The notes: generated by a model not told the origin, from the letters alone. DNA of 48,051 nucleotides from Macrostomum lignano (GCA_002269645.1 NIVC01003203.1:122379-170429), one strand, 5' to 3'. Positions 10,939 to 47,750 are shown, counted from the stretch's first letter. Numbers and translations: made by a program.

Positions 10939-11478
10939 TTCCATTATTGTCCCTGCAGCTTCCATTATTGTCCCTGCAGCTTCCATTTTTGTCCCTGTAG
11001 CTTCCGTTGTTTTTCATGTAGCTTCCAATATTGTTCATGTAGCTTCCATTATTGTCCCTGTAGCTTCCATTGTTTTTCATGTAGCTTCCAATATTGTTCA
11101 TGTAGCTTCCAATATTGTTCATGTAGCTTCCATTATTGTCCCTGCAGCTTCCATTATTGTCCCTGCAGCTTCCATTTTTGTCCCTGTAGCTTCCGTTGTT
11201 TTTCATGTAGCTTCCATTATTGTTCATGTAGCTTCCAATATTGTTCATGAAGCTTCCATTATTATCCCTGCAGCTTCCATTATTGTCCCTGCAGCTTCCA
11301 TTATTGTCCCTGCAGCTTCCATTATTGTCCCTGCAGCTTCCATTATTGTCCCTGCAGATTCCATTGTTTTTCATGTAGCTTCCATTTATTGTTCATGTAG
11401 CTTCCAATATTGTTCATGTAGCTTCCATTATTGTCCCTGCAGCTTCCATTATTGTCCCTGCAGCTTCCATTATTGTCT
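10939..11478. repeat. 21-bp minisatellite, right part
   Basis: Same variants as 6946-8346; resumes in register after the transposon. Confidence 0.95.
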
Positions 11479-21639: not shown

Positions 21640-23303
<1,664 letters not shown>

Positions 23304-26300
23304 TCAGTTGTCAATGGCAAATCAACAGTTACTGTCATTGTGCTACTTATAATTAACACTAGCATATATTCTATGACTAGATTTTAATCCTTACTTTGAC
23401 ATTTTGTTTAAGAAAGTATATTAAAAATTTGCAAGTTATTATTAGAGATCAAGAGAGACAAGAAATTGGGCAAAAAATTCTAAGCCAAGACTTGCTTTTG
23501 AGGTAAGACTTCCTATTATGTTCCTATTTTAATGTTAAAACATTAATATCTATAGCTAACAAATATGCAACCTGTTATATATATATTTATTATCAATGGT
23601 TGAAACTAGGCTAGTAAATGAGATTAGTCTTTTGTTTTAGTTTATAAAACTTTGTTATTTAAAATACTGGCAATCATACATATAAAACCTTTGAAATTAT
23701 ACTAGAGATGAGGTAAATTTTCATTTTGATTTTTGCAAAAAATCAAATTTGAATTTGGGCCTTAAAAGTTTAACCTCAATTTAAAATCCTGAAAATTCTA
23801 ACTTATGAAATTAAATTCGAAAATTTAATTTTAAAAATTTAATTTTTCAGAAATTTTAAACATGCTTTTGTTTATAAGAAATGTAGAGCAAAAGAGATAG
23901 ATGCTATATAAAAAGCATGGGGATTTAGGGTAATAAAAGAGACCTATGATAGGAGAGATAAAGGACAAGGAGAAAGGAGAAGGAAATATTTATGGAGAGA
24001 TATAAAACAAGGAAGAAGAGAAAGCAACTTCTAAGACTTAGTAAAAAGATATAAAATAATAAAAATGATATATAATAGGCAATGGTGACTGTAGACTAAT
24101 ATTGCTATAAGGGCTAAAGTTCATTTGCTAAAAATAACTTCAAATTCCCTTATTTTGTCTATGAAGATTTTTGCAATGTGTTTATTTAGATTTATAAGTC
24201 TCTATTAGCCTAAACAATATTTTGTAGCTTGCCTAAAAACAAAATATAGATAATAGTTTTGCCATAACCAAAATTTCTTATATCCATATCTATATCCATA
24301 GCTAGTAAGCTTAACTCTAAAGGCCTTACCATATTAATCACAGTATTTATAGTGTCAAAAATATTGTTTAAGTCTTTGACCCAATTAAAAGGGACTTAAA
24401 AGCTTCTCTTATGTCATAGTTTAGAACACTTTATATCTACCCTAAAAAAATGACCCATATTTTTTGTATATATCAATGTATACTAAATATATTATCTTAT
24501 ATAAAGCTCTAAATCTTTAATTTTAAAATGTTACTACTAGACTAATGATTTTTATATTTAATTTTAATTAAAAAGTAAAATATTTATTATATTTACAAAA
24601 TGTTTTATCTGTATTATAATATAATAATATATATAAAAGTAAAATTTGTATATTTTTGTTAAATACTTAAACCTTTACTTTGTAAAAACAGAATTCAGTT
24701 TTGGGTTAATTAGCTATTAAATGTTATGATTATATATGTATAGATCCCTATTGTGACTATTATTCATAATCATAATGTAAAGTCTTTAAAATTTTTGGTA
24801 GGCCCTATATAATATATAAATATACCAAAATAATAAACAACCAAAAGCCCAAAATCACTTTTGAATACCAATATGTATACCAAGTTTCTTAAGTGTACCA
24901 TAGAAATTTTTGACATTATGCCTTTTTTCTGACTAGGCCTATGCCATGGCCCTTAAATATTGAAAGTGAAAACTATAGAAATAAACTTTAGCCTTTTCTC
25001 CTAACCCTAGGAGCTATACCTAGTCCCTTCTAGTCTAACCCCAATGCAATTTTGCATCTCATGTCAAAATTTTTGTCTTTGACTTTGTTGCTTAAGTCAA
25101 GAGTTAAATCCCAAATTCTAGGACCTTAAGAGCTTTTTTTCTCACATCAAAAGTGAAAACATTTATCTTAAATTTAGCCATAACCATCCTAACCCATCTT
25201 CCCTAGAATAAGTGTAGAAAACCTGTGGACACACAACATAGGATCTAAAATTGTAGCTAAAAATGCGACGTAACAAAGAACATGAACTAGCTTTTATGCT
25301 AAATATAAGCATAATACTAATTAGATTTGATAATGAAGCATTTAGCCTAAATAAGATAGTCATAGTTACTCTTGCCATTTACCCAAAACTGTACTGCACA
25401 ATAACACTACCTGCCTTGATTCTAGCTGCAATGCAACGTTGGAAAATTCCAAAATTGCAATAGCTAGCAGCCTTTTGTCTACTTATTCTAATAAGGCCTA
25501 ACCCTATCCCTAAGTTTCTAATTCCAAGGACTTAAAGCTCTTCTTAAAAGTGAAAGCATGGATTTTAACATTAGTCCCCAACCACTTAACTACAATATGC
25601 ATGTACCATTGAAATTATTTGTTGTTTAAGTTGAAGTGGAAACCTTGTTTCTTGGAAAAATTTGAGGCAGGTCTTTCCAAAGAATATAGCTTGTACTATA
25701 ACAGACATAGCGAGCTTTCATTTTTCAGCACAAAAAAATGTTATTGTTATTGCTAGGCCTATTATAATTCAAAATTAACTCAAGCAAAATAACACTAAGT
25801 CAAGACTATCATTATCCCACAGTCAAGACAAGTGAATGTGTGACACAAAAATATGGTTACGACTATTAATGACAATCAGCGAATAAACTGCTTGAAAATG
25901 GTCAAAGCAGACCAAAAACGCGTTGCACTAATTACTATGTTTGTTCGGAATTATTCCAAATCTGAGTTTCACTTTACATAATTTCAACTTTTTCTTAGCC
26001 ACTTAGGCCTAATTGGTTTTATTGTTAATATACGATGATAGTAATGATAGAAATAATTGGCGACTTGATATTGATGCTTCAGGTCAGCTTGTGACTTAGA
26101 ACTTTTTTTAACCACTGCTTCTTATTATTCTGCTGATTAAATTTTTTTAGACAAGTTACATTACGCTAATTAAATAAAAATCACACGAATCTCTGAATTT
26201 GAGTTAGTTCTGACTGCAATTAAAAACGTTTAAACTGAATAACAAAAAAGTTGGAAACGTCTAATTTGGAAAAGTCCGATCGAGTTAAGCAACACTTTAA

Positions 26301-29048: not shown

Positions 29049-29357
29049 CCCCCCCCCAAATGAACTAGGGGATACTTTTGATTCATGCATGCTTGGACTA
29101 CTGCAATTACTGAATACAGTCCGGGCTAGTGGCTAAGAGCGCATGAGTCCCACATATCGATCGTCTGAAATACCGCTTAGGCCGCGGAAATTTTCTAAGG
29201 CTTTTACACCCACCACTCTTAAACAAATAGAGACTAATTTCTAAAATTTCTGATTTTCAAACTGCGAGCCACTCATGTATTGTCCACCTCAATCCGTATT
29301 TTAGAGTGGTGTTTTACCCGAGGCCAACTTGCAGCGGACCCGAGCCGCAAGGCAGAC

Positions 29358-29906
29358 ATGGAAAAAGTGTGGCGAGACTACAAGCGTCAGCAGTCCGGAG
29401 GCAATGCAGAGGAGGCCGCCGGCGATGCGGAGGCCGGCGGCGGCGCCACCGTTTTCGACCGCACAATGGAGCTATCGCAGATCATCGAGCAGCTTGGAAT
29501 CGATTTGGAGGAGGCGGGCGGAGGCGGTGGTGGCGGCGGAGGAGGAAACGGCGGCTCTGGCGCTGCCGGGAGCGCCGCGGGCGGCCTCTTGCGCAAGGAT
29601 TTCGACCTCAACATGAACGAGCGGCGCTATCTGCAGGCAGTGGAGCTCGGCGACCTCGCCACGGTTCGGCGCAGCATCGAAAGCGCCTCCTCGCTAGGCA
29701 TCAACATCAACTGCCGTGACTCGCTCGGCCGCTCAGCCCTCCACGTCGCCATCGAATACGAGCACATCGAGCTGCTGGAGGTGCTACTGGCGTACAACTT
29801 GGAGCTCGGCGACGCGCTGCTGCACGCCATTCAAGAGGAGAACATCATCGCTGTGGAGATGCTGCTCAGCTCGCAAACCGAGCGACAGAAAAAGAAGGAC
29901 TTATCC
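29358..29906 (+). CDS. TRPC: TRPC coding exon 1 (poly-Gly N-terminus, ankyrin repeats)
   Basis: ATG at 29358; [12 protein letters not shown]...[21 protein letters not shown]; GTGAGT donor at 29907; upstream acceptor TTTTAG at about 29303. Confidence 0.9.
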
Positions 29907-32900
29907 GTGAGTTTACCATCCGATTTTGACGCTTTTTATTGTCTGCATTTCTACTTTACGAGTATCGGCTTAGCCTGTGCATCGAACTTAAGCTCAAACG
30001 TAATTATTTGACGGGGGAGAATGCAGAAAAATAATCTTTCTATGGCTGATCTGGCTTAGTGCTCATTTATCACCACATACGAGTAAGTACCCTAAAGCAT
30101 ACTCTGGCGACCCCATGACACCCCTTCAATAATGATTACGAGCTCGTTTTTTATTAGCTGGAGGGCTTTGGGCACCCCGGCAACATTGTTCCCTTTTGTC
30201 TATGGTTTCCGGCATTCATACTTGCGGTAACAATTTAATTGTTTGTCGGCTTTTTTCGATTGTTGCCGGATTTCAGACGAATGTATTTGGCTATCAAAAC
30301 AAGGAACAACAATAGCAACACGGCGAAAGTGTTTCATAGTCACAAAAAGTTCTTAAGAACAAACCGCAGAAAAGCCTCAGATAATCTTTCAAAAATCGAT
30401 CCGGAACACGCTCAAACTCCTGGCAGAGCCCCTTCTCGTTGAGGAACTGTCGGAACCTTGCCACGTGAAGCTTCCGTTGCGTCTCGGTCGATTTCGGCAC
30501 TGAGTCACTCTCAAGTTGGTCCAACATTTCCAGATCTTCGCTACCTAGCTCAGGCAGCCCGTTGGAACTGGACGACGCATCCAGGTTGTCCATCTCCAGA
30601 ACGTAGCGCGTGCTCGACTCTCGGGTGACAAAAGCCAACTCGTCCGTGGAGAGTCCACATATTTCTCCGCCAGGAATGTTTGCGTAGCGAATCATAGCTA
30701 GTTTTCCTATTTGCACTCCGAATAGGAGAATTAATTCAAGCTCAAAATCAACTTGAGAATTAACTCATGGCAGCCAGGCTAGCTGTCTTCACTGTCCTTT
30801 AAATTTGCCATAAACGATTAATTATCTCTACAACCCTTTCATTTAGAGAGCAACTAAATTTGCCATAGACGATTGATTATCTCTACAACCCTTTCAAAGC
30901 GCATTCCGGCAACAATCGCATTTCATACTCAGCATCCGCACTATACATGTCTGGGCCATAGACAGGGGAAGTCAAAAGGGTACAATAATGACATGTACCG
31001 ATTTTTTTCGGCAGCAATTGCTCTACTAAGCTTCAGCCGCTACGCGGCTTCAGCTTACGCAATTGCTGCCGAAAAAAATCGGTATATATCGTTACATTGT
31101 TTCGCAAACTGTGGCAGGGGCGTAGCCAGGAATTTTGATTGGGGGGCCGTGAGTTAGGGGGCGCCATCTTCTTATAGGGGGGGCGCCAGTTTCTTTTAGG
31201 GGGGGGGCGCCAGTTTCTTTTAGGGGGGCGCCAGTTTCTTATAGGGGGCGCCAGTTTCTTTTAGGAGGGGGGGCGCCAGTTTCTTTTGGGGGCGCCAGCT
31301 TCTTATAGGGGGGGGGGGCGCCAGTTTCTTTTAGGGGGGCGCCAGTTTCTTTTAGGGGGCGCCAGTTTCTTTTAGGAGGGGGCGCCAGTTTCTTTTAGGG
31401 GGGCGCCAGAACGCGTAGTGACATTTAGACTTCAGAATGAAGGGACAATCGCTCCATAAGAAGTTTTACCTGGGCGGTTCCGAATGGATTATTAAATCAT
31501 TGTCATTGTTGCACGAAATCATTGCCAATTAACTGCGGCAAAATTACAGTCGGATAACTGCCGCAGCTCCGCTCCATCCATGGCCTACTTGCAAATCAGA
31601 GATTGGGAGCGCATTGCCGGTCGCTTGCGATCCAAGTTTTCTTTGCTAGTAAATTTTGCTTTTTTCTTAACTATTCGTTTCTCTTTTCCTTCAGCCTGCT
31701 TAGCTTTATGTGTTTAAGAATTCAGTTAAAGGGTTCAGTCACACGAGTTGTTATGTTGAAGCTGACCGGCATGGAAGCAGTGTCACGCCTGGTTGCAAAC
31801 TGCTCAAATTCCTCTACTCATATTTTCCGTTGTAGAATTTTATTTATTTTCTTTTTTCTTTTCCATTCCGCTTAGAAGGCGTTCAGATTTCGCTGGAGGC
31901 TGCCGGTTTTCACTGCGAACTGCACTGGCGAGCTGGGAAGTTTTCAGGTTCTAAGCACTGAATTCCCAATATCTCACCTGCTGGACTCCCGAATTGCAAA
32001 TGCAGCCAGCAGGTGTTTTGTCCGAGCTGCGCTCACAAGTTTAAAAAGTAAAGATTGAAGAGCTTTGCGCCGCTCAAAATACATACAGACAGGAACAGCA
32101 GAAAGTTCACGGGAGCTTTGCTTGTTTGCCCGTCTCTGGTAGCAGTTCATGAAGAATGTGCATTGCAAGCCTGATAAACCTGTGAAGCAACCTTTTAAAA
32201 GCACTTCATTTGTAATCCGGAAGTCCAGAAGGAGAGATATTGTATATGTTTAGTGCTAAAAATCTTCAATCATCTTATCTTAAGATATGGGGTTGTAGCC
32301 TGGTGGTTAGAGCGTCGGACTCACGACTGAAAGGTCGGGGGTTCGATTCTCGACTCACCAGGAGCAATTTGTGTCCTTGATCACGGCACTTAACTCTGCA
32401 TTGCTTCACTTCACCCAGCTGTAAAATGGGTGCCAGCATTAGCTGGGGTAACTGAGGGTGTGTGTGGCGACGCCGCCCCCCCCCCCCCCCCTAGTCCTTG
32501 GACTGAACAGCCGTACGCAGCCTTCAGATGCGCCGCGCAATAGCTGCGGCTGAGCTGTCGGTTACAAATCTGACCATTAGGGCAGTTATAATCAATTATT
32601 ATTTTATATATTTTTAAGTTGATGCATTTCACCGTGAAAATCGGCCTACAGCAAAATTCACAATATCTGCGAGCCTAGCGTCTTTTAATTCAGTTGACCT
32701 GTCCATGAAACCACCAACAGCCTCCGATCCTCTAACCGCAGGGCCTCCTCGGCACAACACCGTCCAGCAGTTTCACGCCGGACGTCACGCCGATCATCCT
32801 GGCCGCCCAGATCGATAACTACGAGATCATCAAGCTGCTGCTGGATCGCGGCGACCGCGTACCCAAGCCGCACGAACTGCGCTGCGCTTGCGTCGACTGC

Positions 32901-35900
32901 GTCAGGGCGCACAAGGAGGACAGTCTGCAGCACTCGAAATCGCGCATCAACGCCTACAAAGCCCTGGCCAGCCCGTCGCTGATTGCCCTGTCTAGCAAGG
33001 ATCCGATTCTGACAGCCTTCGAGCTCAGCTGGGAGATGCACCGACTCGGCCGGCTCGAGCACGAGTTCCGCGAGGAGTACGAGAACCTGTCGGCCGATTG
33101 TCAGAAGTTTGCCACGGCTCTGCTGGAGCAGACTCGCAGTTCCGAGGAGCTGGCCATCGTGCTTAACCAGGACGCCGGACAGGGCAACGCAAAGCTCAAC
33201 GACAAAACCCTTACGGAGGGTGAGAGGATGAACTTGTCCCGACTCAAGATGGCCATCAAGTACAAGCAGAAGAAGGTTAGTTCGACGTCCCGTTCCGTCC
33301 CGTTCCGTCCCGTTCCGTCCCGTTCCGTCCCGTTCCGTCCCGTTCCGTCCCGTTCCGTCCCGTTCCGTCCCGTTCCGTCCCGTTCCGTCCCGTTCCGTCC
33401 CGTTCCGTCCCGTTCCGTCCCGTTCCGTCCCGTTCCGTCCCGTTCCGTCCCGTTCCGTCCCGTTCCGTCCCGTTCCGTCCCGTTCCGTCCCGTTCCGTCC
33501 CGTTCCGTCCCGTTCCGTCCCGTTCCGTCCCGTTCCGTCCCGTTCCGTCCCGTTCCGTCCCGTTCCGTCCCGTTCCGTCCCGTTCCGTCCCGTTCCGTCC
33601 CGTTCCGTCCCGTTCCGTCCCGTTCCGTCCCGTTCCGTCCCGTTCCGTCCCGTTCCGTCCCGTTCCGTCCCGTTCCGTCCCGTTCCGTCCCGTTCCGTCC
33701 CGTTCCGTCCCGTTCCGTCCCGTTCCGTCCCGTTCCGTCCCGTTCCGTCCCGTTCCGTCCCGTTCCGTCCCGTTCCGTCCCGTTCCGTCCCGTTCCGTCC
33801 CGTTCCGTCCCGTTCCGTCCCGTTCCGTCCCGTTCCGTCCCGTTCCGTCCCGTTCCGTCCCGTTCCGTCCCGTTCCGTCCCGTTCCGTCCCGTTCCGTCC
33901 CGTTCCGTCCCGTTCCGTCCCGTTCCGTCCCGTTCCGTCCCGTTCCGTCCCGTTCCGTCCCGTTCCGTCCCGTTCCGTCCCGTTCCGTCCCGTTCCGTCC
34001 CGTTCCGTCCCGTTCCGTCCCGTTCCGTCCCGTTCCGTCCCGTTCCGTCCCGTTCCGTCCCGTTCCGTCCCGTTCCGTCCCGTTCCGTCCCGTTCCGTCC
34101 CGTTCCGTCCCGTTCCGTCCCGTTCCGTCCCGTTCCGTCCCGTTCCGTCCCGTTCCGTCCCGTTCCGTCCCGTTCCGTCCCGTTCCGTCCCGTTCCGTCC
34201 CGTTCCGTCCCGTTCCGTCCCGTTCCGTCCCGTTCCGTCCCGTTCCGTCCCGTTCCGTCCCGTTCCGTCCCGTTCCGTCCCGTTCCGTCCCGTTCCGTCC
34301 CGTTCCGTCCCGTTCCGTCCCGTTCCGTCCCGTTCCGTCCCGTTCCGTCCCGTTCCGTCCCGTTCCGTCCCGTTCCGTCCCGTTCCGTCCCGTTCCGTCC
34401 CGTTCCGTCCCGTTCCGTCCCGTTCCGTCCCGTTCCGTCCCGTTCCGTCCCGTTCCGTCCCGTTCCGTCCCGTTCCGTCCCGTTCCGTCCCGTTCCGTCC
34501 CGTTCCGTCCCGTTCCGTCCCGTTCCGTCCCGTTCCGTCCCGTTCCGTCCCGTTCCGTCCCGTTCCGTCCCGTTCCGTCCCGTTCCGTCCCGTTCCGTCC
34601 CGTTCCGTCCCGTTCCGTCCCGTTCCGTCCCGTTCCGTCCCGTTCCGTCCCGTTCCGTCCCGTTCCGTCCCGTTCCGTCCCGTTCCGTCCCGTTCCGTCC
34701 CGTTCCGTCCCGTTCCGTCCCGTTCCGTCCCGTTCCGTCCCGTTCCGTCCCGTTCCGTCCCGTTCCGTCCCGTTCCGTCCCGTTCCGTCCCGTTCCGTCC
34801 CGTTCCGTCCCGTTCCGTCCCGTTCCGTCCCGTTCCGTCCCGTTCCGTCCCGTTCCGTCCCGTTCCGTCCCGTTCCGTCCCGTTCCGTCCCGTTCCGTCC
34901 CGTTCCGTCCCGTTCCGTCCCGTTCCGTCCCGTTCCGTCCCGTTCCGTCCCGTTCCGTCCCGTTCCGTCCCGTTCCGTCCCGTTCCGTCCCGTTTCTGTC
35001 TCTGGTCTTTACGCAGTCTTTGTTGGAATCAAGCTCAGTTGAGCGTATAGATGAAACTTCATAGCAGAAAGAATTATCCAAGTGCTTTTTTAATTGCACC
35101 CCTCAGTTTGTGGCCCATCCGCACTGTCAGCAGTTGCTAGCCGCACTCTGGTACGAAGGCCTACCCGGTTTCCGTCGGAAGCACATGTTCTTTCAAATGG
35201 GCATGATTGGCACCTTTGCCGGGATTTTCCCGCTGCTGTCAATGGTCTACCTGGTGGCGCCTCGATCGGAACTGGGACAGAAGATGCGAAAGCCGTTTAT
35301 TAAATTTATCTGCCACAGCGCCTCCTACATGTTATTCCTCGGCTTTCTGGTGCTGGCTGCCATCCGGGTTGAAGATCTCATCATGGACACCCTGGAGGAG
35401 AAAATGCAGGAGAGAGGCGGTGCGCCGAGCATTGTAGAATGGATCATTGTGATCTATATCCTAGGTGAGATGCTCTGTGCCATGCCATCTAGATATGGTG
35501 GAATGGACCATTGTGATCTATGTCCTAGGTGAGATGCTCTGTGCCATGCCATCTAGATATGGTGGAATGGACCATTGTGATCTATGTCCTAGGTGAGATG
35601 CTCTGTGCCATGCCATCTAGATATGGTGGAATGGACCATTGAGATCTATGTCCTAGGTGAGATGCTCTGTGCCATGCCATCTAGATATGGTGGAATGGAC
35701 CATTGTGATCTATGTCCTAGGTGAGATGCTCTGTGCCATGCCATCTAGATATGGTGGAATGGACCATTGTGATCTATGCCCTAGGTGAGATGCTCTGTGC
35801 CATGCCATCTAGATATGGTGGAATGGACCATTGTGATCTATGTCCTAGGTGAGATGCTCTGTGCCATGCCATCTAGATATGGTGGAATGGACCATTGTGA

Positions 35901-38900
35901 TCTATGCCCTAGGTGAGATGCTCTGTGCCATGCCATCTAGATATGGTGGAATGGACCATTGTGATCTATGTCCTAGGTGAGATGCTCTGTGCCATGCCAT
36001 CTAGATATGGTGGAATGGACCATTGTGATCTATGCCCTAGGTGAGATGCTCTGTGCCATGCCATCTAGATATGGTGGAATGGACCATTGTGATCTATGTC
36101 CTAGGTGAGATGCTCTGTGCCATGCCATCTAGATATGGTGGAATGGACCATTGTGATCTATGCCCTAGGTGAGATGCTCTGTGCCATGCCATCTAGATAT
36201 GGTGGAATGGACCATTGTGATCTATGTCCTAGGTGAGATGCTCTGTGCCATGCCATCTAGATATGGTGGAATGGACCATTGTGATCTATGTCCTAGGTGA
36301 GATGCTCTGTGCCATGCCATCTAGATATAGTGGAATAGACCATTGTGATCTATGTCCTAGGTGAGATGCTCTGTGCCATGCCATCTAGATATGGTGGAAT
36401 GGACCATTGTGATCTATGTCCTAGGTGAGATGCTCTGTGCCATGCCATCTAGATATGGTGGAATGGACCATTGTGATCTATGTCCTAGGTGAGATGCTCT
36501 GTGCCATGCCATCTAGATATGGTGGAATGGACCATTGTGATCTATGTCCTAGGTGAGATGCTCTGTGCCATGCCATCTAGATATGGTGGAATGGACCATT
36601 GTGATCTATGCCCTAGGTGAGATGCTCTGTGCCATGCCATCTAGATATGGTGGAATAGACCATTGTGATCTATGTCCTAGGTGAGATGCTCTGTGCCATG
36701 CCATCTAGATATGGTGGAATGGACCATTGTGATCTATGCCCTAGGTGAGATGCTCTGTGCCATGCCATCTAGATATGGTGGAATGGACCATTGTGATCTA
36801 TGTCCTAGGTGAGATGCTCTGTGCCATGCCATCTAGATATGGTGGAATGGACCATTGTGATCTATGTCCTAGGTGAGATGCTCTGTGCCATGCCATCTAG
36901 ATATGGTGGAATAGACCATTGTGATCTATGTCCTAGGTGAGATGCTCTGTGCCATGCCATCTAGATATGGTGGAATGGACCATTGTGATCTATGTCCTAG
37001 GTGAGATGCTCTGTGCCATGCCATCTAGATATGGTGGAATGGACCATTGTGATCTATGCCCTAGGTGAGATGCTCTGTGCCATGCCATCTAGATATGGTG
37101 GAATGGACCATTGTGATCTATGTCCTAGGTGAGATGCTCTGTGCCATGCCATCTAGATATGGTGGAATGGACCATTGTGATCTATGCCCTAGGTGAGATG
37201 CTCTGTGCCATGCCATCTAGATATGGTGGAATGGACCATTGTGATCTATGTCCTAGGTGAGATGCTCTGTGCCATGCCATCTAGATATGGTGGAATGGAC
37301 CATTGTGATCTATGTCCTAGGTGAGATGCTCTGTGCCATGCCATCTAGATATGGTGGAATGGACCATTGTGATCTATGTCCTAGGTGAGATGCTCTGTGC
37401 CATGCCATCTAGATATGGTGGAATGGACCATTGTGATCTATGCCCTAGGTGAGATGCTCTGTGCCATGCCATCTAGATATGGTGGAATGGACCATTGTGA
37501 TCTATGTCCTAGGTGAGATGCTCTGTGCCATGCCATCTAGATATGGTGGAATGGACCATTGTGATCTATGTCCTAGGTGAGATGCTCTGTGCCATGCCAT
37601 CTAGATATGGTGGAATGGACCATTGTGATCTATGTCCTAGGTGAGATGCTCTGTGCCATGCCATCTAGATATGGTGGAATGGACCATTGTGATCTATGTC
37701 CTAGGTGAGATGCTCTGTGCCATGCCATCTAGATATGGTGGAATAGACCATTGTGATCTATGTCCTAGGTGAGATGCTCTGTGCCATGCCATCTAGATAT
37801 GGTGGAATGGACCATTGTGATCTATGTCCTAGGTGAGATGCTCTGTGCCATGCCATCTAGATATGGTGGAATAGACCATTGTGATCTATGTCCTAGGTGA
37901 GATGCTCTGTGCCATGCCATCTAGATATGGTGGAATAGACCATTGTGATCTATGTCCTAGGTGAGATGCTCTGTGCCATGCCATCTAGATATGGTGGAAT
38001 GGACCATTGTGATCTATGTCCTAGGTGAGATGCTCTGTGCCATGCCATCTAGATATGGTGGAATAGACCATTGTGATCTATGTCCTAGGTGAGATGCTCT
38101 GTGCCATGCCATCTAGATATGGTGGAATGGACCATTGTGATCTATGTCCTTGTCATAGCAAAGCGGTGGGACGATCTTAATAAATAAAAATAATTGATTA
38201 AACCTGCACTAATGGCTAGATGTGCAACCGACAGCTCAGCCGCAGCTATTGCGCGGCGCATCTGAAGGCTGCGTACGGCTGTTCAGTCGCCCATGGTGAC
38301 AGTCTTGAAAAGTTTATACCCTCAGTCCATGCATCCAAAATCCAGCAGTGGGGCAAATCCAATCAAACAAGCGTTGGGCGTGGTCGAGCCAAGCCATACG
38401 CCAAGCTTTCTCTTGTCTCTACGAATGGACTTTGCTAGCCAAGCAAGCAGGAGCGGCCAACGCCCACGTCTGCGTCATAATTTCAATAGAAATATTGTCA
38501 ATAATAACGAAAGAAGAATTGAGTACATTAGTATGTGGGCTAATACGCTAGTTAGTGATAAACATGTGTTACAGGTTAGATTACATTATGCAACTTTAAA
38601 TTGGGGCGACTTTCGAATGTTAAAAAATCAAACAGATTCTTTGGAGGGTTTTAAATGAAGGATAAAAATACACCGGGAAAGGGGGCAGACTGTAACAACG
38701 TTTTCTGACAACAGTAGAGAGTAGTTCTGAAAGAATAGAACGCACTGATGGTAATTTAATCGGTAGATAAGCCTTGATCCATCGCGTGCTGGGCCAAGGA
38801 CTACACTAGTACCGATTGCTATCTAGCAGTCCTTGAATTAGGTGAACCGGGCAGGGCCACTCAATATTGCATTGGCAGTAAATGAGGGATAATTAAACCT

Positions 38901-41900
38901 ATCGAGCATGCATTCAGCAGCTTCTTTTGGCCGCCCAGCCCGTCCGGGGAAACCGGCTGGCAAGCATAAAAACCACACCCAGATTCCCTCTCCTTTCTTA
39001 CATCGCTTTTGTCCACCTCTCTCGCTCCCTTCTATTGAGGCAGACAGATGGAGAAAGAGGGGGGATTAAATTGAAGCTCGGTTCTCCCCGAGCTAGCTGG
39101 CCCCAATTTGGCATTCATGTCTGGGCGTGGCAGATTTGAATCGAATTCCAATTCCCATTTCCCCCCCCAACTGCCTCGCTTTCCCCCATATCCGGCTGTG
39201 AGGCCCCTGCCTCAAAGATAATCTACCTTTGGCTTCCCGTAGTTGCGGCAAGCAAATGCCATCGTTTTATTGCTTCTCTCCTAACTGCTAAATCGTAACA
39301 CGCTATGATGGTTGCTATGTAGCGGTGATTTACAACCTAATACCAGACTTTAACAATTGATCATCTACGAATTACTACCATTCATTGATTTTATATACAT
39401 GCCTAATCATTTAAACGCCCACATGCACCTGTATATTCTCTCACCTATCTACTCTCACCTGTTTACTGTCTCCCCTGTCTACTCTCTTACCTGTCTACTC
39501 ATCTCCGCCTACTCTCTCACCTCTCCACACTCTCACCTGTCTACCTACTGTATTTATCTATCAGAAATTTTCTTATCAAACTCTGCTAATTGCCACCACA
39601 GGCTTTGTCTGGCAGGAGATCAAACAGCTCTGGGGCGAGGGCATCAAAGCGTACGTGACTGATATGTGGAACCTGCTGGATTTCATCACCAATGCTCTGT
39701 ACGTGGCCACCATCACACTGCGAGGAGTATCTTATTATAGGGTGAGTGCCTCTGCTCAGGAAATCCGGGAGCATGCAGCTTTGGAAGCATGTAACTTAGG
39801 AAACATGTAGCTTAGGGAACATGTAGCTTAGGGAACATATAGCTTAGAGAACATGTAGCTTACGGAACATGTAGCTTAGGGAACATGCAGCTTAGGGAAC
39901 ATGTAGCTTAGGGAACATGTAGCTTACGGAACATGTAGCTTAGGAAACATGCAGCTTGGGAAACTTGCAGCTTAGGGAACATGTAGTTTTGAGAACATGT
40001 AGCTTAGGGAACATGTAGCTTACGGAACATTTAGCTTAGAGAACATGCAGCTTAGGGAAAATTTAGCTTAGAGAACATGTAGCTTAGGGAACATGCAGCT
40101 TAGAGAACATGTAGCTTAGGGAACATGTAGCTTACGGAACATGTAGCTTACGGAACATGCAGCTTAGAGAACATGTAGCTTAGGGAACATGTAGCTTACG
40201 GAACATTTAGCTTAGAGAACATGTAGCTTAGGGAACATGCAGCTTAGGGAACATGTAGCTTAGAGAACATGTAGCTTAGGGAACATGCAGCTTAGGGAAA
40301 ATTTAGCTTAGATAACATGTAGCTTAGGGAACATGTAGCTTAGGGAACATGCAGCTTAGGGAAAATTTAGCTTAGAGAACATGTAGCTTAGGGAACATGC
40401 AGCTTAGGGAACATGTAGCTTAAGGAACATGCAGCTTAGGGAACATGTAGCTTACGGAACATTTAGCTTAGAGAACATGTAGCTTAGGGAACATGTAGCT
40501 TAGGGAACATGTAGCTTAGGGAAAATGCAGCTTAGGGAACATGTAGCTTACGGAACATGCAGCTTAGAGAACATGTAGCTTAGGGAACATGCAGCTTAGA
40601 GAACATGCAGCTTAGGGAACATGCAGTTTAGGGAACATGCAGCTTTATTTTTGCTAACATTATTTATGCAAGGAAAAGTTTTTTGTGGATCGATTTAAGA
40701 TAACTCTGGGCAAATTGTCGCAAGTTTTCGTCAGTTGATGCCTATAAAACAAGAAGCCAAAGGAGAATGCGAGCTATCTCGGGTTGTCAGGAGCGGGTCA
40801 GTTTCCAGGTTTTTGGCTGGGAGAAGCAACAGTAAGCCTTGCTGTCACTGAGTGAGAAATTTCCTTGCAGAGCAAAAGTGGCCCATGCGTGGGCGCGGAC
40901 TAGCTGTCCATAGCGCAATTAATCACGGATTAGGTAATTGGGAGACAATCTCATAGTCGTTGCTGGAGGTACCAGCATATTCGCCATCTGCATTAAGTTA
41001 TGTTCCTATGCTTACAGAAGTAAAGCTTTCAGCAGCAGCTTTTATCCTACGCTCTTATTTCGTCCAGGTGAGGAGATTAAGTACTTGTGCACTTTTATTG
41101 TGAATGGCGGAGCTGTCAAACTAAATACTGGATGGCCGATTCTTCGCCTCTCACTTCGATTCGTCAAAATCAAACAAATATTGAAACTGGAACTCGACTC
41201 TCAGTTCCGCGTGCGTGCATGCACATCTCACCCGATAGCTGCTTTGTCTGTGTTGACAGTGCTAAGTGCCGCATTTACCCTTCAGTGCAAACTAGCCTTT
41301 ACGAGCTATACCCATCGACTGTGCTATCCGAAGCTGTCTTAAAAGCTGTTTTTTCCCGCAATGATACAGCCTGATAGCTATTACAAGCGTAGATAGTAAA
41401 AACTTTTAACTACTTTTAAAAAATTCAGACTAAAATGTTTTTGGAAAGCCTCGTGTTTCGTGTTCCCAGGTCAGCGCTAGTAACTTTACAGCTGAAAAAT
41501 TTGAAAAAAAGTTTAAAATTATTAAGATCTGTAGTTTTCAGCAGCAATGGCAGGGAAACCGTCAGCTACAGAAGTAGGGCAACCGTCAGCTACAGAAGTA
41601 GGGCAACCGTCAGCTACAGAAGTAGGGCAACCGTCAGCTACAGAAGTAGGGAAACCGTCAGCTACAGAAGTAGGGAAACCGTCAGCTACAGAAGTATGGC
41701 AACCGTCAGCTACAGGAGTAGAGCAACCGTCAGCTACAGAAGTAGGGCAACCGTCAGCTACAGAAGTAGGGCAACCGTCAGCTACAGAAGTATGGCAACC
41801 GTCAGCTATAGAAGTTGGGCAACAGAAGTAGGGCAACCGTCAGCTACAGAAGTAGGGAAACCGTCAGCTACAGAAGTATGGCAACCGTCAGCTACAGGAG

Positions 41901-44900
41901 TAGAGCAACCGTCAGCTACAGAAGTAGGGCAACCGTCAGCTACAGAAGTAGGGCAACTGTCAGCTACAGAAGTAGGGCAACCGTCAGCTACAGAAGTATG
42001 GCAACCGTCAGCTATAGAAGTTGGGCAACAGAAGTAGGGCAACCATCAGCTACAGAAGTATGGCAACCGTCAGCTATAGAAGTTGGGCAACAGAAGTAGG
42101 GCAACCGTCAGCTACAGAAGTAGGGCAACCGTCAGCTACAGAAGTAGGGCAACCGTCAGCTACAGAAGTAGGGCAACCGTCAGCTACAGAAGTAGGGCAA
42201 CCGTCAGCTACAGAAGTATGGCAACCGTCAGCTATAGAAGTTGGGCAACAGAAGTAGGGCAACCGTCAGCTACAGAAGTAGGGCAACCGTCAGCTACAGA
42301 AGTATGGCAACCGTCAGCTATAGAAGTTGGGCAACAGAAGTAGGGCAACCGTTAGCTACAGAAGTGGGGCAACCGCCAGCTACAGAAGTAGGGCAACCGT
42401 CAGCTACAGAAGTTGGGCAACCGCCAGCTACAGGAGTAAGGGCAGTAGGGCAGTACATCAATAGGGCTCTCCTTCACCACAACGTCGCCAAAATGCCAAC
42501 CTTCCAATTCATCCAGGTGCACCAGAACTCGGAGCTGCGCAGCCTACACCGCAAGTACTGGGACGCGTACGACCCAACTCTGATCTCGGAGTGCCTATTT
42601 GCCATAGCGAACATCTTCTCAATGCTGAAACTGGTTAACATCTTTACTATTAATCCTCACCTGGGTCCGCTGCAGATCTCGCTAGGCCGCATGCTAAATG
42701 ATATTCTGAAATTCCTGTTCGTTGTGGTGCTAGTGATCTGCTCGTTTGCTTGCGGCTTTAACCAGCTCTACTGGTTCTACGCCTATCAGAGGAATAAGTA
42801 TTGTCAGGATAACAAATTCTACTTCGGCATCACGGGAACCGACTTGGACAAGTACAGCTACTGCGTGACAAGGGGACGGACCTTTTCCAAGTGAGTCTTT
42901 CTTTGATGGACACTGGCAACTGAAGTATTTTCAAATGCAGAGACTGCACAGACAGACAATTTTTGAAAGCTAAAATTGACAGTAAAGTAAGATGAGAGAA
43001 GTGCAAATAAGCAGTGCAAAATGAGAGAGATGGACGACTGTGAGTAAAGTACAGTTTTGGGTTTATTTGCTGTTCCGCTTGAGTTCGCTTCAGCGCTATC
43101 TAAACATGACAATGCCAAACATACATGTACATGCTGGTAGTGGGTTGAAGTAAATAGCGAGAGCTGATGAGGGAGCGAGGCTGAAGTGGATGAGGAAAAA
43201 CTAGATGAGACAGACTAGATGAGAGAGACTAGATGAGGGAGAGACTAGATGAGGGAGAGACTAGATGAGGGACAGACTAGATGAGGTAGAGACTAGATGA
43301 GGGAGAGACTAGATGAGGGACAGACTAGATGAGGTAGAGACTAGATGAGGGAGAGACTAGATGAGGGAGAGACTAGATGAGGGAGAGACTAGATGAGGGA
43401 GAGACTAGATGAGGGAGAGACTAGATGAGGGAGAGACTAGATGAGGGAGAGACTAGATGAGGGAGAGACTAGATGAGGGAGAGACTAGATGAAGGAGAGA
43501 CTAGAGGGAAAGAGAAAAGAACAGAGAAATCAATTGCGTCATCACTCTAACCGACTTGATGTGAGTATTGAATTATAAGTGCTAAAATTCATGTCATCGA
43601 TGTGAAGAGACTGAACTGCTAATGCAGCGACCTGGGTTCGAATTTTGATAGCGTAATTTTGCATTAAAAGCTTTAACGGAAAACTTTAGGTTTAACAGAC
43701 TTAACGAAAGAAAGAATAAAAGAATCGCCATGTGAACCATAAAAACTCATTGGGTTTCTGCTAAGATGTCCAGGCTCATTTGGGGTTGAATTACGAGTTT
43801 TCATGGCTCATGGGGGAATTGCTAAGATTTCAATGGCTCATGGGGGAATTGCTGAAATGCTGTGGCTCAAGGCTCATGGAGGAATTGCTAAGATGTCAAG
43901 GCTCATGGGAAATCGCCGAAATGCTTGGCTCATTGGGGATTGCTCAGATACCATGAGCCAAAGCTCATAGGGATCTGATATCTTAGTCTAGATAGCTGGC
44001 TTTCGGAGCAGTGCTTTTCTGCTTTAGAAAATCATTTTTTCCTCTAAAAATGCAAAAATGATAACTGTGCAAGATCATAACCTACGTGTAGTTTATTCAA
44101 ACATTTTTATTTCTTTTTTGTTGCCTCCCCAACGGGGGGCGCAGATTGCTAGTCCAATATACTAAATAAGGTTGCTTTTATGCATATGGGTATGCAATTT
44201 ATTCTAGCAAAACAGCTAACTAAAATACGTATGAGCCATGTCAGAAAGTCAGAGGCTGCCAATATAATCTCATATGAATTCTACCGTAAAGTGCAAGTAG
44301 GTTTGAAGCGCAAACGACAATAAAACTGTAGCACTCTGAGTACTGCAGAGATCCGCCTACATTTTCCATTATGTCGTTTTACTCGATAACCAATGGCAAC
44401 CTGCAAACCCCACAGTCTGTTTGAGATCACCCAGTCCCTCTACTGGTCAGCCTACGGCCTGATAGATTTGAGCAACACCGACCTCGAGTACGAGCACTCG
44501 TTCACGGAATTCATTGGTAATGGTCGGCTATTTAATGGACTGGTTGATTTATCATCATTTGACAACGTTGAGAGCCTCCTATCACTTTCATTTTCGCATC
44601 TGGCACCATAATTAATTAATAACGTTTCAGGGGGAAAGTAGTTAGGTAAAATCCATTAAAAATATCTTCTGACGCGTAAATGAATATATTTTAATTGTTT
44701 ACTCTCACTCACAGTCCGAGAGTCAGTCTCACCCGTCACTCTCACAGTCCGAGAGTCAGTCTCACCCGTCACTCTCACAGTCCGAGAGTCAGTCTCACCC
44801 GTCACTCTCACAGTCCGAGAGTCAGTCTCAGCCGTCACTCTCCCAGCCCGAGAGTCAGTCTCACCCGTCACTCTCACAGTCCGAGAGTCAGTCTCACCCG

Positions 44901-47750
44901 TCACTCTCACAGTCCGAGAGTCAGTCTCAGCCGTCACTCTCCCAGCCCGAGAGTCAGTCTCACCCGTCACTCTCACAGTCCGAGAGTCAGTCTCACCCGT
45001 CACTCTCACAGTCCGAGAGTCAGTCTCACCCGTCACTCTCACAGTCCGAGAGTCAGTCTCACCCGTCACTCTCACAGTCCGAGAGTCAGTCTCACCCGTC
45101 ACTCTCACAGTCCGAGAGTCAGTCTCACCCGTCACTCTCACAGTCCGAGAGTCAGTCTCACCCGTCACTCTCACAGTCCGAGAGTCAGTCTCAGCCGTCA
45201 CTCTCACAGTCCGAGAGTCAGTCTCACCCGTCACTCTCACAGTCCGAGAGTCAGTCTCACCCGTCACTCTCACAGTCCGAGAGTCAGTCTCACCCGTCAC
45301 TCTCACAGTCCGAGAGTCAGTCTCACCCGTCACTCTCACAGTCCGAGAGTCAGTCTCACCCGTCACTCTCACAGTCCGAGAGTCAGTCTCACCCGTCACT
45401 CTCACAGTCCGAGAGTCAGTCTCAGCCGTCACTCTCACAGTCCGAGAGTCAGTCTCAGCCGTCACTCTCCCAGCCCGAGAGTCAGTCTCACCCGTCACTC
45501 TCACAGTCCGAGAGTCAGTCTCAGCCGTCACTCTCCCAGCCCGAGAGTCAGTCTCACCCGTCACTCTCACAGTCCGAGAGTCAGTCTCACCCGTCACTCT
45601 CACAGTCCGAGAGTCAGTCTCACCCATCACTCTCCAAGCCGAGAAGCAGTCTCAGCCGTCACTCTCCCAGCAGCCCGAGAGCCAGTCTCAGCCGTCACTC
45701 TCCGCAGGCAAGCTCATGTACGGCGCCTTCTCTGCAATAACATTCATCGTCCTGCTCAACATGTTGATTGCCATGATGAACTGCAGCTTTGAAGAGATTG
45801 TGGTACGTTTCTAATATTCAGTGCCTGCTACTCAAAGTAGAGCGGCGATAGAAAATAAAAAACAGATTTTTCACATCTGCAGGCCCAGGCAGACACGGAG
45901 TGGAAGTTCGCCCGCGGCAAGCTGTGGATCAGCTACTTTGACGAAGGCGGCACCCTGCGACGCCATTCAACATCATCCCGAGCCCGAAGTCTTTCCTGTA
46001 CGCGATGGCCTGGCTCAAGGATAAGGTCTGCTCCTGCTCTAAGCGGCACCAGCGCAGCAAGTGGCAGAGCATCCGGGTAAGACTGCAAGATTTTATCTAA
46101 GTGAATTTTGCATCATGTTTGCAATTGAGAAGCGGCTTATCTCTCCTGTTGCAGAAAGTGGTGAAGAAAGTAAACGAGAAGGAGGCTCGGTACCAGGTGA
46201 AGAAGCCTGTTTGCTTGTTGATGTCGTCCCACATTAAAACTAAACGGAAATCCTAACCCCAACCCTCAGTCGGTGATGCGCGACCTTATCAAGCGCTACT
46301 TGATGGTCCGTCAGAAGTCGGACGACAAGCAGGGCGTCACAGAGGATGACTTGAACGAGATCAAAGGCGACATATCGGCGTTTCGCTTCGAATTGTTGGA
46401 GATTTTCCGAACCAACGGCATGCGAACGCCCGCCCACATGCAGCAGCGGTCCAGTAAGGGGTCGGGCTGACCGTAGCGCTGGGAAACAAAGTGGCTGGCT
46501 AGATTAAAAGAGAAACGGGAACATAAATCAGTCACGTGCAAAGAAAATAAATCTATCAATAATTTCCTGACTTGATTCCACTAGTACCAAAAAGCCACTT
46601 TAGGAAATGTATCTCAGTCAACATGAAGCTTATAAAGCTCAGGAAACATGTATGTAGCTTAGGGAACATGCAGCTAAAGAAAAATGTAGCTTAAGGAACA
46701 TGCAGCTTAGGAAACATGCAGCTTAAGGAACATGCAGCTTAGGAAACATGCAGCTTAAGGAACATGTAGCTTAAGGAACATGCAGCTTAGGGAACATGCA
46801 GCTTACGGAACATGCAGCTTAGGGAGCATGCAGCTTACGGAACATGCAGCTTAGGGAGCATGCAGCTTAGGGAGCATGCAGCTTAGGGAGCATGTAGTTT
46901 AGGGAGCATGCAGCTTAGGGAACATATTCTATAATTCAAGGAAGCTTAGGGAACATGCAGCTTAAGGAAACGCAGCTTACGGAACGTGCAGCTTAGTGAG
47001 CACTGGCCGAAGTATTTGTGCAGGTGTGCGCTCTCGTGCGGGATGAAGTTACCCAAGTCGGTTGAAAAAAACTCACCATGGCGATTCTCCCCAGCCAAGC
47101 TGCGGCGCCGCGGCAGCAAGCGGTCGATGCAGAGCCGGCGCTACGGCCGATTCCCCGGCGGCGAAGACCAGCAGCAGCAGCAGCAGGAGGGCGGCAGCAT
47201 CGGCCGGTTCGACACCATCAGCGAGGAGGAATCAGACAGTCTCAACGGCAGCGTCAACGGCTGGCCGCTGGCCGGTCGGCAGGCCGGCGCCAGGACGCCG
47301 ACGACTCCGCCGCGACGCCGGCTACCGCCGCTGAGCTCGCAGGACAGCTCGGAGAGCTTCCAGTCCAGCGGGGCCCAGGCCAGCCCGCCGGAGCGGCGAC
47401 CGCGGCAGCAGCAGGCGGAGCTGGCCCTGGATCCGACCCAGCTGCCCGGCTACCAGCGGTCCGGCACCGCCAACTCCGACACCGCCGCCGCCAACGCCGC
47501 CGCGGCCGCGTTCACCAAGAAGACAATCGGCGCCGTCAAGAAGGTGTCATTCAACTGGAACCAGGAGGACGACAACAAGCAGGAGCGGCAGAGATCTGCC
47601 GAAGGTGACGGCGGCTCTGTTTACGTGTACGACGGGTCACCGGAAGCTTCAACACCTCAGCCGCAGCCGCCGCATCAAGCTGCGACAAGAGAGCAGCAGC
47701 AGGCGCCGCCGCAGCGAGCTCGGGGCGAGCGGCGCAGCGATCTGGTCTGA
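29358..47750 (+). CDS. TRPC: TRPC (canonical TRP / TRP-gamma-like) cation channel, about 1075 aa; as given it has a 1-nt deletion at about 45958
   Basis: Exons 29358-29906, 32742-33275, 35107-35464, 39602-39741, 42517-42890, 44416-44516, 45708-45802, 45883-46076, 46155-46196, 46270-46453, 47095-47750. Ankyrin repeats, [20 protein letters not shown]_2 motif, [21 protein letters not shown], pore [33 protein letters not shown] box, [20 protein letters not shown] coiled coil. Orthologue within the TRPC family not determined. Confidence 0.93.
30369..30593 (-). mobile_element. possible Crypton (tyrosine-recombinase transposon)/DUF3504-type N-terminal remnant
   Basis: [25 protein letters not shown]...[12 protein letters not shown] resembles the PKST...F..FL....L..YLR.FY pattern I recall from Crypton-derived proteins; no catalytic domain follows. 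Confidence 0.45.
30996..31084. other. perfect 26-bp inverted repeat with nested inner hairpins
   Basis: TACCGATTTTTTTCGGCAGCAATTGC (30996-31021) and its exact reverse complement (31059-31084); inner TAAGCT/AGCTTA and GCCGC/GCGGC pairs. Confidence 0.9.
31115..31409. mobile_element. truncated inverted copy of the 12.3-kb hAT MITE
   Basis: One TIR (CAGGGGCGTAGCCAGG) plus expanded GGGGGCGCCAGTTTCTTTTA repeats; second TIR missing. Confidence 0.8.
31880..32230. repeat. second copy of the 4.0-4.5 kb dispersed repeat family
   Basis: GCACTGAATTCCCAATATCTCACCTGCTGGAC...GAGCTGCGCTCA is shared with 4103-4183. Confidence 0.7.
32289..32605 (+). mobile_element. SINE family A, copy 3 (TRPC intron 1)
   Basis: GGGGTTGTAGCCTGGTGGTTAGAGCG...GGTTCGATTC head, CORE-like middle, shared tail. 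Confidence 0.85.
32742..33275 (+). CDS. TRPC: TRPC exon 2
   Basis: CTAACCGCAG acceptor; [12 protein letters not shown]...[11 protein letters not shown]; GTTAGT donor; 534 nt. Confidence 0.95.
33286..34994. repeat. perfect (CGTCCCGTTC)n 10-bp satellite, about 171 units, TRPC intron 2
   Basis: No variant units seen by eye; starts 10 nt after the donor. Confidence 0.98.
35107..35464 (+). CDS. TRPC: TRPC exon 3 (pre-S1, S1, S2 start)
   Basis: [24 protein letters not shown]...[12 protein letters not shown]; GTGAGA donor; phase 1. Confidence 0.95.
35437..38150 (+). repeat. 64-bp tandem array, about 42 units, containing a copy of the TRPC exon 3 end plus its 5' splice site
   Basis: Unit GTGAGATGCTCTGTGCCATGCCATCTAGATATGGTGGAATGGACCATTGTGATCTATGTCCTAG; period confirmed from 35465 to 35529. 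Confidence 0.97.
38188..38288 (-). mobile_element. 5'-truncated SINE family A tail
   Basis: Matches only the 3' ~100 nt of the other copies. Confidence 0.75.
39602..39741 (+). CDS. TRPC: TRPC exon 4 (S2-S3)
   Basis: [14 protein letters not shown]...[14 protein letters not shown]; CAG acceptor, GTGAGT donor. Confidence 0.95.
39785..40645. repeat. 16-bp minisatellite (AGCTTAGGGAACATGT), TRPC intron 4
   Basis: Direct reading; same family at 46640-46995. Confidence 0.95.
41548..42440. repeat. 24-bp minisatellite (CCGTCAGCTACAGAAGTAGGGCAA) with higher-order structure, TRPC intron 4
   Basis: Direct reading; recurring short-unit variant CTATAGAAGTTGGGCAACAGAAG. Confidence 0.95.
42517..42890 (+). 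CDS. TRPC: TRPC exon 5 (S4-S5)
   Basis: [25 protein letters not shown]...[19 protein letters not shown]; CAG acceptor, GTGAGT donor; phase 2. Confidence 0.95.
43201..43505. repeat. 16-bp minisatellite (CTAGATGAGGGAGAGA), TRPC intron 5
   Basis: Direct reading. Confidence 0.95.
43755..44153 (+). mobile_element. possible Helitron-like 3' end preceded by degenerate GGGGGAATTGCTAAGATG repeats
   Basis: Hairpin GCCTCCCC-AAC-GGGGGGC (44123-44140), 8 nt, then CTAG|T. Confidence 0.45.
44416..44516 (+). CDS. TRPC: TRPC exon 6 (pore)
   Basis: [19 protein letters not shown]...FTEFIG; CAG acceptor, GTAATG donor. Confidence 0.93.
44701..45707 (+). repeat. 33-bp minisatellite (GTCAGTCTCACCCGTCACTCTCACAGTCCGAGA), about 30 units, ending in the TRPC exon 7 acceptor
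   Basis: The last, degenerate unit ...CCGTCACTCTCCGCAG| is the functional 3' splice site. Confidence 0.95.
45708..45802 (+). CDS. TRPC: TRPC exon 7 (S6)
   Basis: [32 protein letters not shown]; GTACGT donor. Confidence 0.95.
45883..46076 (+). CDS. TRPC: TRPC exon 8 (TRP domain) with apparent 1-nt deletion
   Basis: [25 protein letters not shown] in one frame, then (P)[11 protein letters not shown]... in another. The exon is 194 nt but its neighbours need 195. Confidence 0.92.
46155..46196 (+). CDS. TRPC: TRPC exon 9 ([14 protein letters not shown])
   Basis: TTGCAG acceptor, GTGAGA donor; 42 nt, phase 0-0. Confidence 0.88.
46270..46453 (+). CDS. TRPC: TRPC exon 10 (C-terminal coiled coil)
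   Basis: [10 protein letters not shown]...[24 protein letters not shown]; GTAAGG donor; phase 1. Confidence 0.93.
46640..46995. repeat. 16-bp minisatellite (AGCTTAGGGAACATGC), TRPC intron 10
   Basis: Same family as 39785-40645. Confidence 0.93.
47095..47750 (+). CDS. TRPC: TRPC terminal exon (low-complexity Ser/Gln/Ala tail ending RRSDLV*)
   Basis: ACTCAC...TTCTCCCCAG acceptor at 47094 gives the required phase 1. The other CAG at 47023 gives an early stop in phase 1. Confidence 0.8.

Follow-up and report, generated by a model that had tools for sequence, protein, structure and literature searches.

The DNA analyzed here is a stretch of 48,051 nucleotides from Macrostomum lignano (GCA_002269645.1 NIVC01003203.1:122379-170429; "the window" refers to this whole stretch), whose plus strand carries a gene for a TRPC/TRPgamma-type channel. 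In this gene the end of exon 3 and the 5' splice site that follows it are reiterated head to tail in the adjoining intron as copies of a 64-bp unit. We consider this array to be probably a young, lineage-specific intronic minisatellite that chanced to arise across a donor. The anatomy of the array, its derivation from the exon, the unconstrained state of its copies and the outcome of using each alternative donor were observed here. A preliminary description of the same DNA had reported about 42 tandem copies of an exon end and its 5' splice site, and our count and period agree with it (42.4 copies, a 64-bp period and 42 donors).

The exons of the channel gene were placed by tblastn with homologues and verified against solved structures. 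The spliced protein shows collinear, full-length similarity to solved TRPC channels, including the TRP_2 domain, S1-S6, the pore and the TRP box, which places it in this family (E = 2.8e-166 and 1.2e-106 against Drosophila TRPgamma, 9vqq; E ~1e-150 against mouse TRPC4, 5z96). Its protein matches are taxonomically mixed and come from insects, spiders, rotifers and flatworms. Exon 3 (35107..35464, plus strand; 358 nt, ending in phase 1) codes for pre-S1/S1 and the beginning of helix S2 and was placed by tblastn with a gap-free alignment to 9vqq and 5z96, while exon 4 (39602..39741, plus strand) completes S2 and carries S3. The junction of exons 3 and 4 is gap-free when compared with the TRPgamma and TRPC4 structures, and three homologous proteins (P0001-P0003) are also continuous there.

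Anatomy and derivation of the array

Tandem Repeats Finder delimits the 64-bp minisatellite at 35437..38150 on the plus strand, with 42.4 copies, 98% matches, 0% indels and a score of 5288. The monomers are of minisatellite size (a class of about 10-100 bp), lie head to tail inside intron 3 and make up 65% of it. In the register set by the donor at 35465, 42 units are counted, running from GTGAG to CCTAG, of the form GTGAGATGCTCTGTGCCATGCCATCTAGATATGGTGGAATGGACCATTGTGATCTATGTCCTAG. Both GTGAGATGC and CCTAG|GTGAGA occur 42 times, invariably at a spacing of 64 nt, from 35465 to 38089. The first of these 42 identical donors is intron 3's authentic 5' splice site (CTAG|GTGAGA, 35465..35470, plus strand). 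The other 41 are pseudo-5' splice sites (GTGAGA; 35529..38094, plus strand) that follow in 64-nt steps from 35529 to 38089, each after an exon-like ...TATGTCCTAG, and since no donor variant was found among the 42, the authentic donor sequence is reiterated identically in the monomers. The unit has stops in every frame and a length that is not a multiple of 3.

The last unit (38089..38150, plus strand) is truncated and ends in ...TATGTCCT|TGTCATAGC, with no AG|GT beyond it. Because this unit ends in CCTTG, the array holds 41 internal AG|GT junctions besides the authentic one; the earlier count of about 41 such sites was correct, while the statement that every unit ends in CCTAG does not extend to the last. 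The unique remainder of intron 3 (38151..39601, plus strand) contains a truncated copy of a dispersed element of about 110 bp (38179-38288), followed by a degenerate 16/30/46-bp array (39426-39544), as well as the acceptor region TGCTAATTGCCACCACAG.

The sequence begins to resemble the repeat at about 35431-35437, which is 28-34 nt inside exon 3, and continues to do so through the donor, so the first monomer spans the exon-intron boundary. Comparison with the repeat consensus identifies the source segment, or unit zero, as 35434..35497 (plus strand), composed of the last 31 nt of exon 3 and the first 33 nt of intron 3. The exonic part, GTAGAATGGATCATTGTGATCTATATCCTAG, differs from the consensus by three transitions, as had been noted in the preliminary description, and the first intronic half-unit does not differ from it at all. 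The 34-nt intron-derived half of the unit was found 42 times in the window, always within the array, against an expectation of zero from 100 shuffles. We also considered whether the exon had captured a pre-existing dispersed satellite and rejected this, as the intron-derived half has no copies outside the array in the window.

Homologous loci were collected by a metagenome scan in which 44 loci were fetched, with protein identities of 31-76%, and the exon boundary could be read in 16 of them; none is close enough to date the array. All 16 belong to other invertebrates and share both the codon and the phase at which the exon stops (...G|GT), and the intron position is old for this reason. A tandem array over or beside the homologous donor was found in none of the 44 fetched loci, all of them distant relatives at 31-76% identity, and the tandem-repeat content of homologous TRPC loci is mostly below 2%. 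The comparison of orthologous loci proposed in the preliminary description thus returned a shared intron position and an array that appears to be lineage-specific. Since the exon end encodes conserved S2 residues, since the junction is gap-free and since the 16 loci share the intron position, we read the exon end as the original and the array as its copy. The match of exon and intron to the unit, together with the conserved start of S2, upholds the earlier proposal of an amplified exon end plus donor. The Rogers model, in which an intron is gained when an exonic AGGT segment is duplicated in tandem, was considered and set aside, as the duplication straddles an existing boundary and creates no new intron position in the mRNA.

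Variation among the copies is limited to four sites over about 2.6 kb of repeats, with all changes given as transitions. Unit position 41 is changed from G to A in seven units (TGG>TAG), position 59 from T to C in nine (Val>Ala), position 50 in one (Val>Glu) and position 33 in one. The TGG>TAG change, which the preliminary description had seen in several copies, affects bases 36337, 36657, 36913, 37745, 37873, 37937 and 38065, and the unit at 36297 also carries Met>Ile. The string of unit types reads ..e.C.C.C.C..A...CAC..A.C.C...C....A.AA.A. and shows variants that are common to scattered units; across 35721-36168 position 59 alternates in every second unit, which results in a 128-bp higher-order pattern. 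Given so few variant sites, and their interspersed and alternating sharing, the array is young and has evolved in the manner of a minisatellite. The interspersed variant map, taken from one assembled haplotype, is consistent with ongoing unequal exchange. Such a pattern is unlike that of selected coding sequence, and unlike the product of an assembly that stuttered.

Each unit can be divided so that a 36-nt segment bounded by AG and GTGAG is left, and the phase-1 translation of this segment is the consensus 12-aa peptide in 25 units, the Val>Ala form in nine, the Val>Glu form in one and a form interrupted by TAG in seven. All 42 array copies have ACC (Thr) at a position where the exon and all homologues seen have I, L, F or M. 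Fixation of Thr at this conserved hydrophobic position indicates that the change arose in unconstrained sequence, and the array copies are without coding constraint. The array's Val codon (GTC) matches the state seen most often in homologues and is perhaps ancestral.

Donor choice and alternative explanations

The starting event would be a tandem duplication of the 64 bp that lie across the boundary between exon 3 and intron 3 in the TRPC gene, followed by growth to about 42 copies through unequal exchange or replication slippage in a genome that is unusually minisatellite-prone. The exon and the original donor would have been left intact at the 5' edge of the array, and the remaining 41 donor copies would have become intronic 5' pseudo-splice sites. 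As to the donor that is actually used, we infer from the analogy with human arrays that productive mRNA would join the most upstream donor, at 35465, to the exon 4 acceptor at 39601|39602. The array would have no selected function. Its likely effects would be the addition of 2.7 kb to intron 3 and perhaps, in a minority of transcripts, splicing from one of the first one or two pseudo-donors, with a frameshift and a premature stop.

The consequences of each splice choice were obtained by translation. Splicing from 35465 to 39601|39602 gives the conserved protein, retention of one unit (+64 nt) gives a frameshift and a stop within exon 4, and retention of two or more units leads to a stop at 35530 (AGG TGA). 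The later donors are thus all non-productive. The suggestion in the preliminary description that the units act as decoy donors is adopted here and matches the human minisatellite class, with one amendment: the stop it had placed near 35530 for any later donor applies when at least two units are kept, and a single unit stops in exon 4. Masking of the pseudo-donors by RNA structure was not evident, as three units and the native junction were not significantly more stable than shuffled sequences (z = -1.05 and -1.9). A scan of the whole window against Rfam returned no family at gathering score.

Several points weigh against a minisatellite that simply arose across a donor and left the first site in use. 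The array of 42.4 units ends inside the exon-derived half, which a single simple duplication does not explain. The dispersed element of about 110 bp starts 28 nt past the array and its homology stops short of the array boundary; a transposon origin of the array edge was rejected for this reason, leaving the truncated last unit still unexplained. The truncated element so close downstream is a hint of later rearrangement. Preference for the most upstream donor was established in mammalian cells, on arrays of 5-9 copies of a 37-bp repeat, and might not extend to an invertebrate array with 42. Experiments in vitro by Eperon et al. in 1993 reportedly favored the donor nearest the acceptor when all sites were occupied by U1. 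In a protein search, the peptide made by joining exons 3 and 4 had no match above 55% identity. Finally, a frameshift of 1 nt in exon 8 means that this copy of the gene may be non-functional.

This frameshift is the basis of an alternative in which the same array lies in a dead gene, a recently inactivated TRPC duplicate where the array would be an unconstrained change or an inactivating lesion and where no splicing solution would be needed. At 45949-45965 exon 8 departs from all TRPC homologues by 1 nt (...GGCACCCTGC^GACGCC...); it reads EGGTLRRHS and the frame is lost after ...YFDEGGTL. An extra C after 45958 restores the frame, and the restored stretch aligns with TRPgamma without gaps. Either the assembly is in error or the gene carries a young pseudogenising mutation, and an indel of 1 nt in a CC run does resemble the former. 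Elsewhere the exons examined have open frames and strong conservation, which extends to about 100 codons after the frameshift, and the exon copy of the repeat retains conserved hydrophobic residues that have been lost from the array copies. Exons of the RhoA-like gene in the same window are also intact. Overall we think it unlikely that the gene is dead, while giving this explanation some weight.

Another possibility, raised in the preliminary description, is recursive splicing, in which the 41 CCTAG|GTGAGA junctions would serve as ratchet points so that intron 3 is removed stepwise or retained units are excised later, with the normal exon 3|exon 4 junction in the final mRNA. Formally, each unit end is a 3' splice site abutting a 5' splice site, and AG|GT is present at all 41 junctions. 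Any such step would regenerate the exact end of exon 3, so its products could be self-correcting. The pyrimidine fraction before the unit-end AG is 0.60, within the range of the real acceptors (0.50-0.75, n=8). The caveat that internal acceptors have weak pyrimidine tracts does not set them apart from the real ones, since the two kinds of acceptor-like site in the unit score 0.65 and 0.60 against this same range; the difference lies instead in the terminal trinucleotide, which is TAG in the array and CAG in 8 of 8 real acceptors. By eye there is no good branch-point motif at the usual distance before the unit-end AG. One unit is 64 nt, less than the shortest validated intron in the window (73 nt, 46197-46269), which agrees with a caveat of the preliminary description.

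Intron length, and perhaps conservation, also speaks against recursive splicing. The known recursive sites occur only in introns of great length, predominantly those above 10 kb and the longest 3% in flies, and recursive splicing has been described as conserved (PMC6110457). Intron 3 is 4137 nt long with sites 64 nt apart, and the array, apparently lineage-specific, is absent from the 44 homologous loci fetched, all from distant relatives. What remains of the ratchet proposal is the formal AG|GT arrangement, and we regard its operation in this gene as very improbable.

That the array, or its copy number, stems from mis-assembly or over-polishing of a shorter repeat is a slighter prospect still. 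The perfection of a neighboring 10-bp array, whose 171 copies show 100% identity, strains belief, and the missing base in exon 8 may be a 1-nt assembly error. The irregular, non-periodic pattern of four variant types is instead that of a real minisatellite and unlike a collapsed or stuttered assembly, and two or three copies would already give the same qualitative conclusion.

The faintest prospect of all is that the 36-nt segments are micro-exons, of which one or several would be spliced in as 12-aa cassettes, in frame, so that the channel's S2 region varies. It is correct, as first described, that the segments are phase 1-1 symmetric and near-duplicates of the start of S2; their length is divisible by 3 and their phase fits that of the host exon, which is a matter of arithmetic only, their internal acceptors have a pyrimidine fraction of 0.65, and the distance from the donor of one unit to the internal acceptor of the next would make a 92-nt intron, which is long enough. 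Adjacent cassettes, however, are only 28 nt apart where the smallest real intron has 73 nt, seven of the 42 contain a stop, all four variant sites are non-synonymous or nonsense, and Thr is fixed in every copy at the conserved hydrophobic position. Including one or two segments would place one or two in-frame insertions of 12 aa midway along S2 and so duplicate half of this transmembrane helix, and no insert is seen there in the solved structures or in the three homologous proteins. In the human precedents the pseudo-sites are silent or used just for the first one or two.

Gene structure and tandem-repeat context

The remaining exons of the TRPC gene, all on the plus strand, comprise an N-terminal exon near 29238-30008, the exon preceding intron 2 at 32742-33275 (its first position being uncertain), and further exons at 42517-42890, 44416-44516, 45708-45802 (exon 7), 45883-46076 (exon 8), 46155-46196 and 46270-46454 or beyond. 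Introns 2-9 measure 1831, 4137, 2775, 1525, 1191, 80, 78 and 73 nt, and the acceptor is CAG in all eight.

Tandem repeats make up about 15% of the Macrostomum lignano genome. In the window, Tandem Repeats Finder assigns 13.6 kb of 48 kb (28%) to tandem-repeat arrays with periods of 3-189 bp. Within the TRPC gene, intron 2 is filled to 93% by a 10-bp repeat, (CGTCCCGTTC) x 170.9, which extends over 33286-34994, starts 11 nt into the intron and shows 100% identity. So perfect an array is unusual over 1.7 kb and reflects an expansion of very recent date or else an artefact of assembly or polishing. In intron 4, a 16-bp array begins 26 nt inside the intron. With 28% tandem repeat and arrays abutting splice sites, an array that starts a few dozen bases inside an exon is an expected tail of the distribution.

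A mirror case of the donor array was observed at the end of intron 6. Here, in the interval 44708-45707, a 33-bp x 30 minisatellite (CTCACAGTCCGAGAGTCAGTCTCACCCGTCACT) leaves no more than 5 nt between itself and the exon 7 acceptor. It contains 28 acceptor-like copies of CACTCTC(N1-2)CAG that are homologous to the real acceptor at 45696-45707. The 33-nt units contain no stop and share the reading frame of exon 7, and use of an upstream pseudo-acceptor would add 11-aa repeats before S6.

The dispersed element found downstream of the donor array has four copies in the 48 kb (38179-38288, 85-184, 13242-13337 and, in reverse orientation, 32501-32612), which are 87-91% identical over about 100-110 bp. 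Its longer copies run on into a tRNA-like ...GGGTCGAGAATCGAACC... stretch, which suggests that the element is SINE-like (similar to a short interspersed element). The copy at 38179-38288 is truncated.

Two other genes were recognized in the window, both on the minus strand. One encodes a RhoA-like GTPase (22330-23310) and has an intron of about 434 nt, of which a 38-bp x 7.8 minisatellite at 22776-23070 fills about 68% with units carrying CCTCCCAG and TCCTCAG motifs. The other is represented by an intermediate-filament rod-domain exon (14754-15305), whose nearest named relatives are from monogenean flatworms (57-63%) and whose best match is at 81%. No sequence of Macrostomum lignano was among the matches to this exon's product or to the TRPC peptide in the protein searches.

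Some repeat families were detected in more than one place. A 16-mer family (GGGAACATGTAGCTTA) is common to 39767-40645 and 46652-46995, a 21-mer family (...TGTAGCTTCCATTA...) to 6938-8347 and 10939-11477, and a G-run/CGCCAGTTTCTTTTAG unit is present in 12376-12545 and 31157-31409 in opposite orientations. Since arrays at different loci share families, many of them belong to dispersed families; the 64-bp array is unique to its locus in the window.

Significance and comparison with known systems

The array poses a hard test of 5' splice-site choice by the spliceosome, with 42 identical strong donors in near-identical upstream context, in an invertebrate, and with wrong choices that are non-productive. 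The same gene also holds the converse arrangement, 28 acceptor-like copies upstream of exon 7. For genome annotation, the donor array may cause gene predictors to misplace the exon 3 donor or to invent 36-nt exons. The array is otherwise an ordinary by-product of a minisatellite-rich genome. A more active role is very doubtful, but it could take the form of stepwise removal from 35465 to the unit-end AGs, or of a copy-number-dependent brake on TRPC expression via frameshifted products or nuclear retention of U1-coated pre-mRNA. If this were true, the array, together with its 33-bp mirror image at the exon 7 acceptor, would make this genome a natural system for amplifying and testing splice sites.

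Micro-exon genes, as known from schistosomes, encode secreted proteins, and their micro-exons are kept open and are separated by ordinary introns. They share with the TRPC array short symmetric segments that are a multiple of 3 in length and bounded by AG and GT, whereas in the TRPC array the spacing is 28 nt, seven stops are present and the host is a transmembrane helix of a channel. The recursive sites of Drosophila and human have the same AG|GT juxtaposition as the TRPC array. They differ from it in lying in very long introns, few per intron, with splicing intermediates that have been seen, while the TRPC gene has 41 near-identical young copies at 64-nt spacing in a 4.1-kb intron.

The closest likeness is to minisatellites that span an exon-intron boundary and reiterate 5' pseudo-sites, which have been described in F7, IFI6/6-16, CBS, LMNB2 and PDGFA (Borensztajn et al. 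2006, PMC1557585). Intron 7 of F7 (IVS7) has 5-9 copies of a 37-bp repeat and the sole site used is the most upstream; in 50 F7 constructs the pseudo-sites were functional but outcompeted by this site (PMC1557585). Of the 25 pseudo-sites in IFI6/6-16, the first two are used together with the authentic site, and in CBS IVS13, with 15-20 repeats, two pseudo-sites are used (PMC1557585). The authentic site alone is used in LMNB2 (100 bp x 10-15) and in intron 4 of PDGFA (81 bp x 16-18) (PMC1557585).

Like the TRPC array, the F7 array starts inside the exon, presents the authentic donor followed by strictly identical intronic pseudo-donors, and has later sites that are mostly non-productive. It differs in having 4 nt of exon per unit against about 31 nt in TRPC, 5-9 copies against 42, and a site use known from experiment where the TRPC array is known from sequence. 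How far the F7 rule that the most upstream site wins reaches outside mammals, and at far higher copy number, is the question posed by the TRPC array. IFI6 and CBS resemble it in being boundary-spanning and in supplying multiple donors. The IFI6 (6-16) unit, described by Turri et al. in 1995, is said to be 12 nt long, so that alternative donors would add in-frame residues, in contrast to the TRPC unit, which at 64 nt is not a multiple of 3 and gives a premature stop from every alternative donor. The CBS repeat is presumably a 31-bp variable number tandem repeat in intron 13. LMNB2 and PDGFA share with the TRPC array a long monomer, a reiterated exon/intron junction and an array that takes up most of the intron, and differ from it in being vertebrate genes with fewer copies. 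By its sequence the TRPC array shows the three structural features of this class, and we take it as a new example of boundary-spanning minisatellites, not as a new mechanism.

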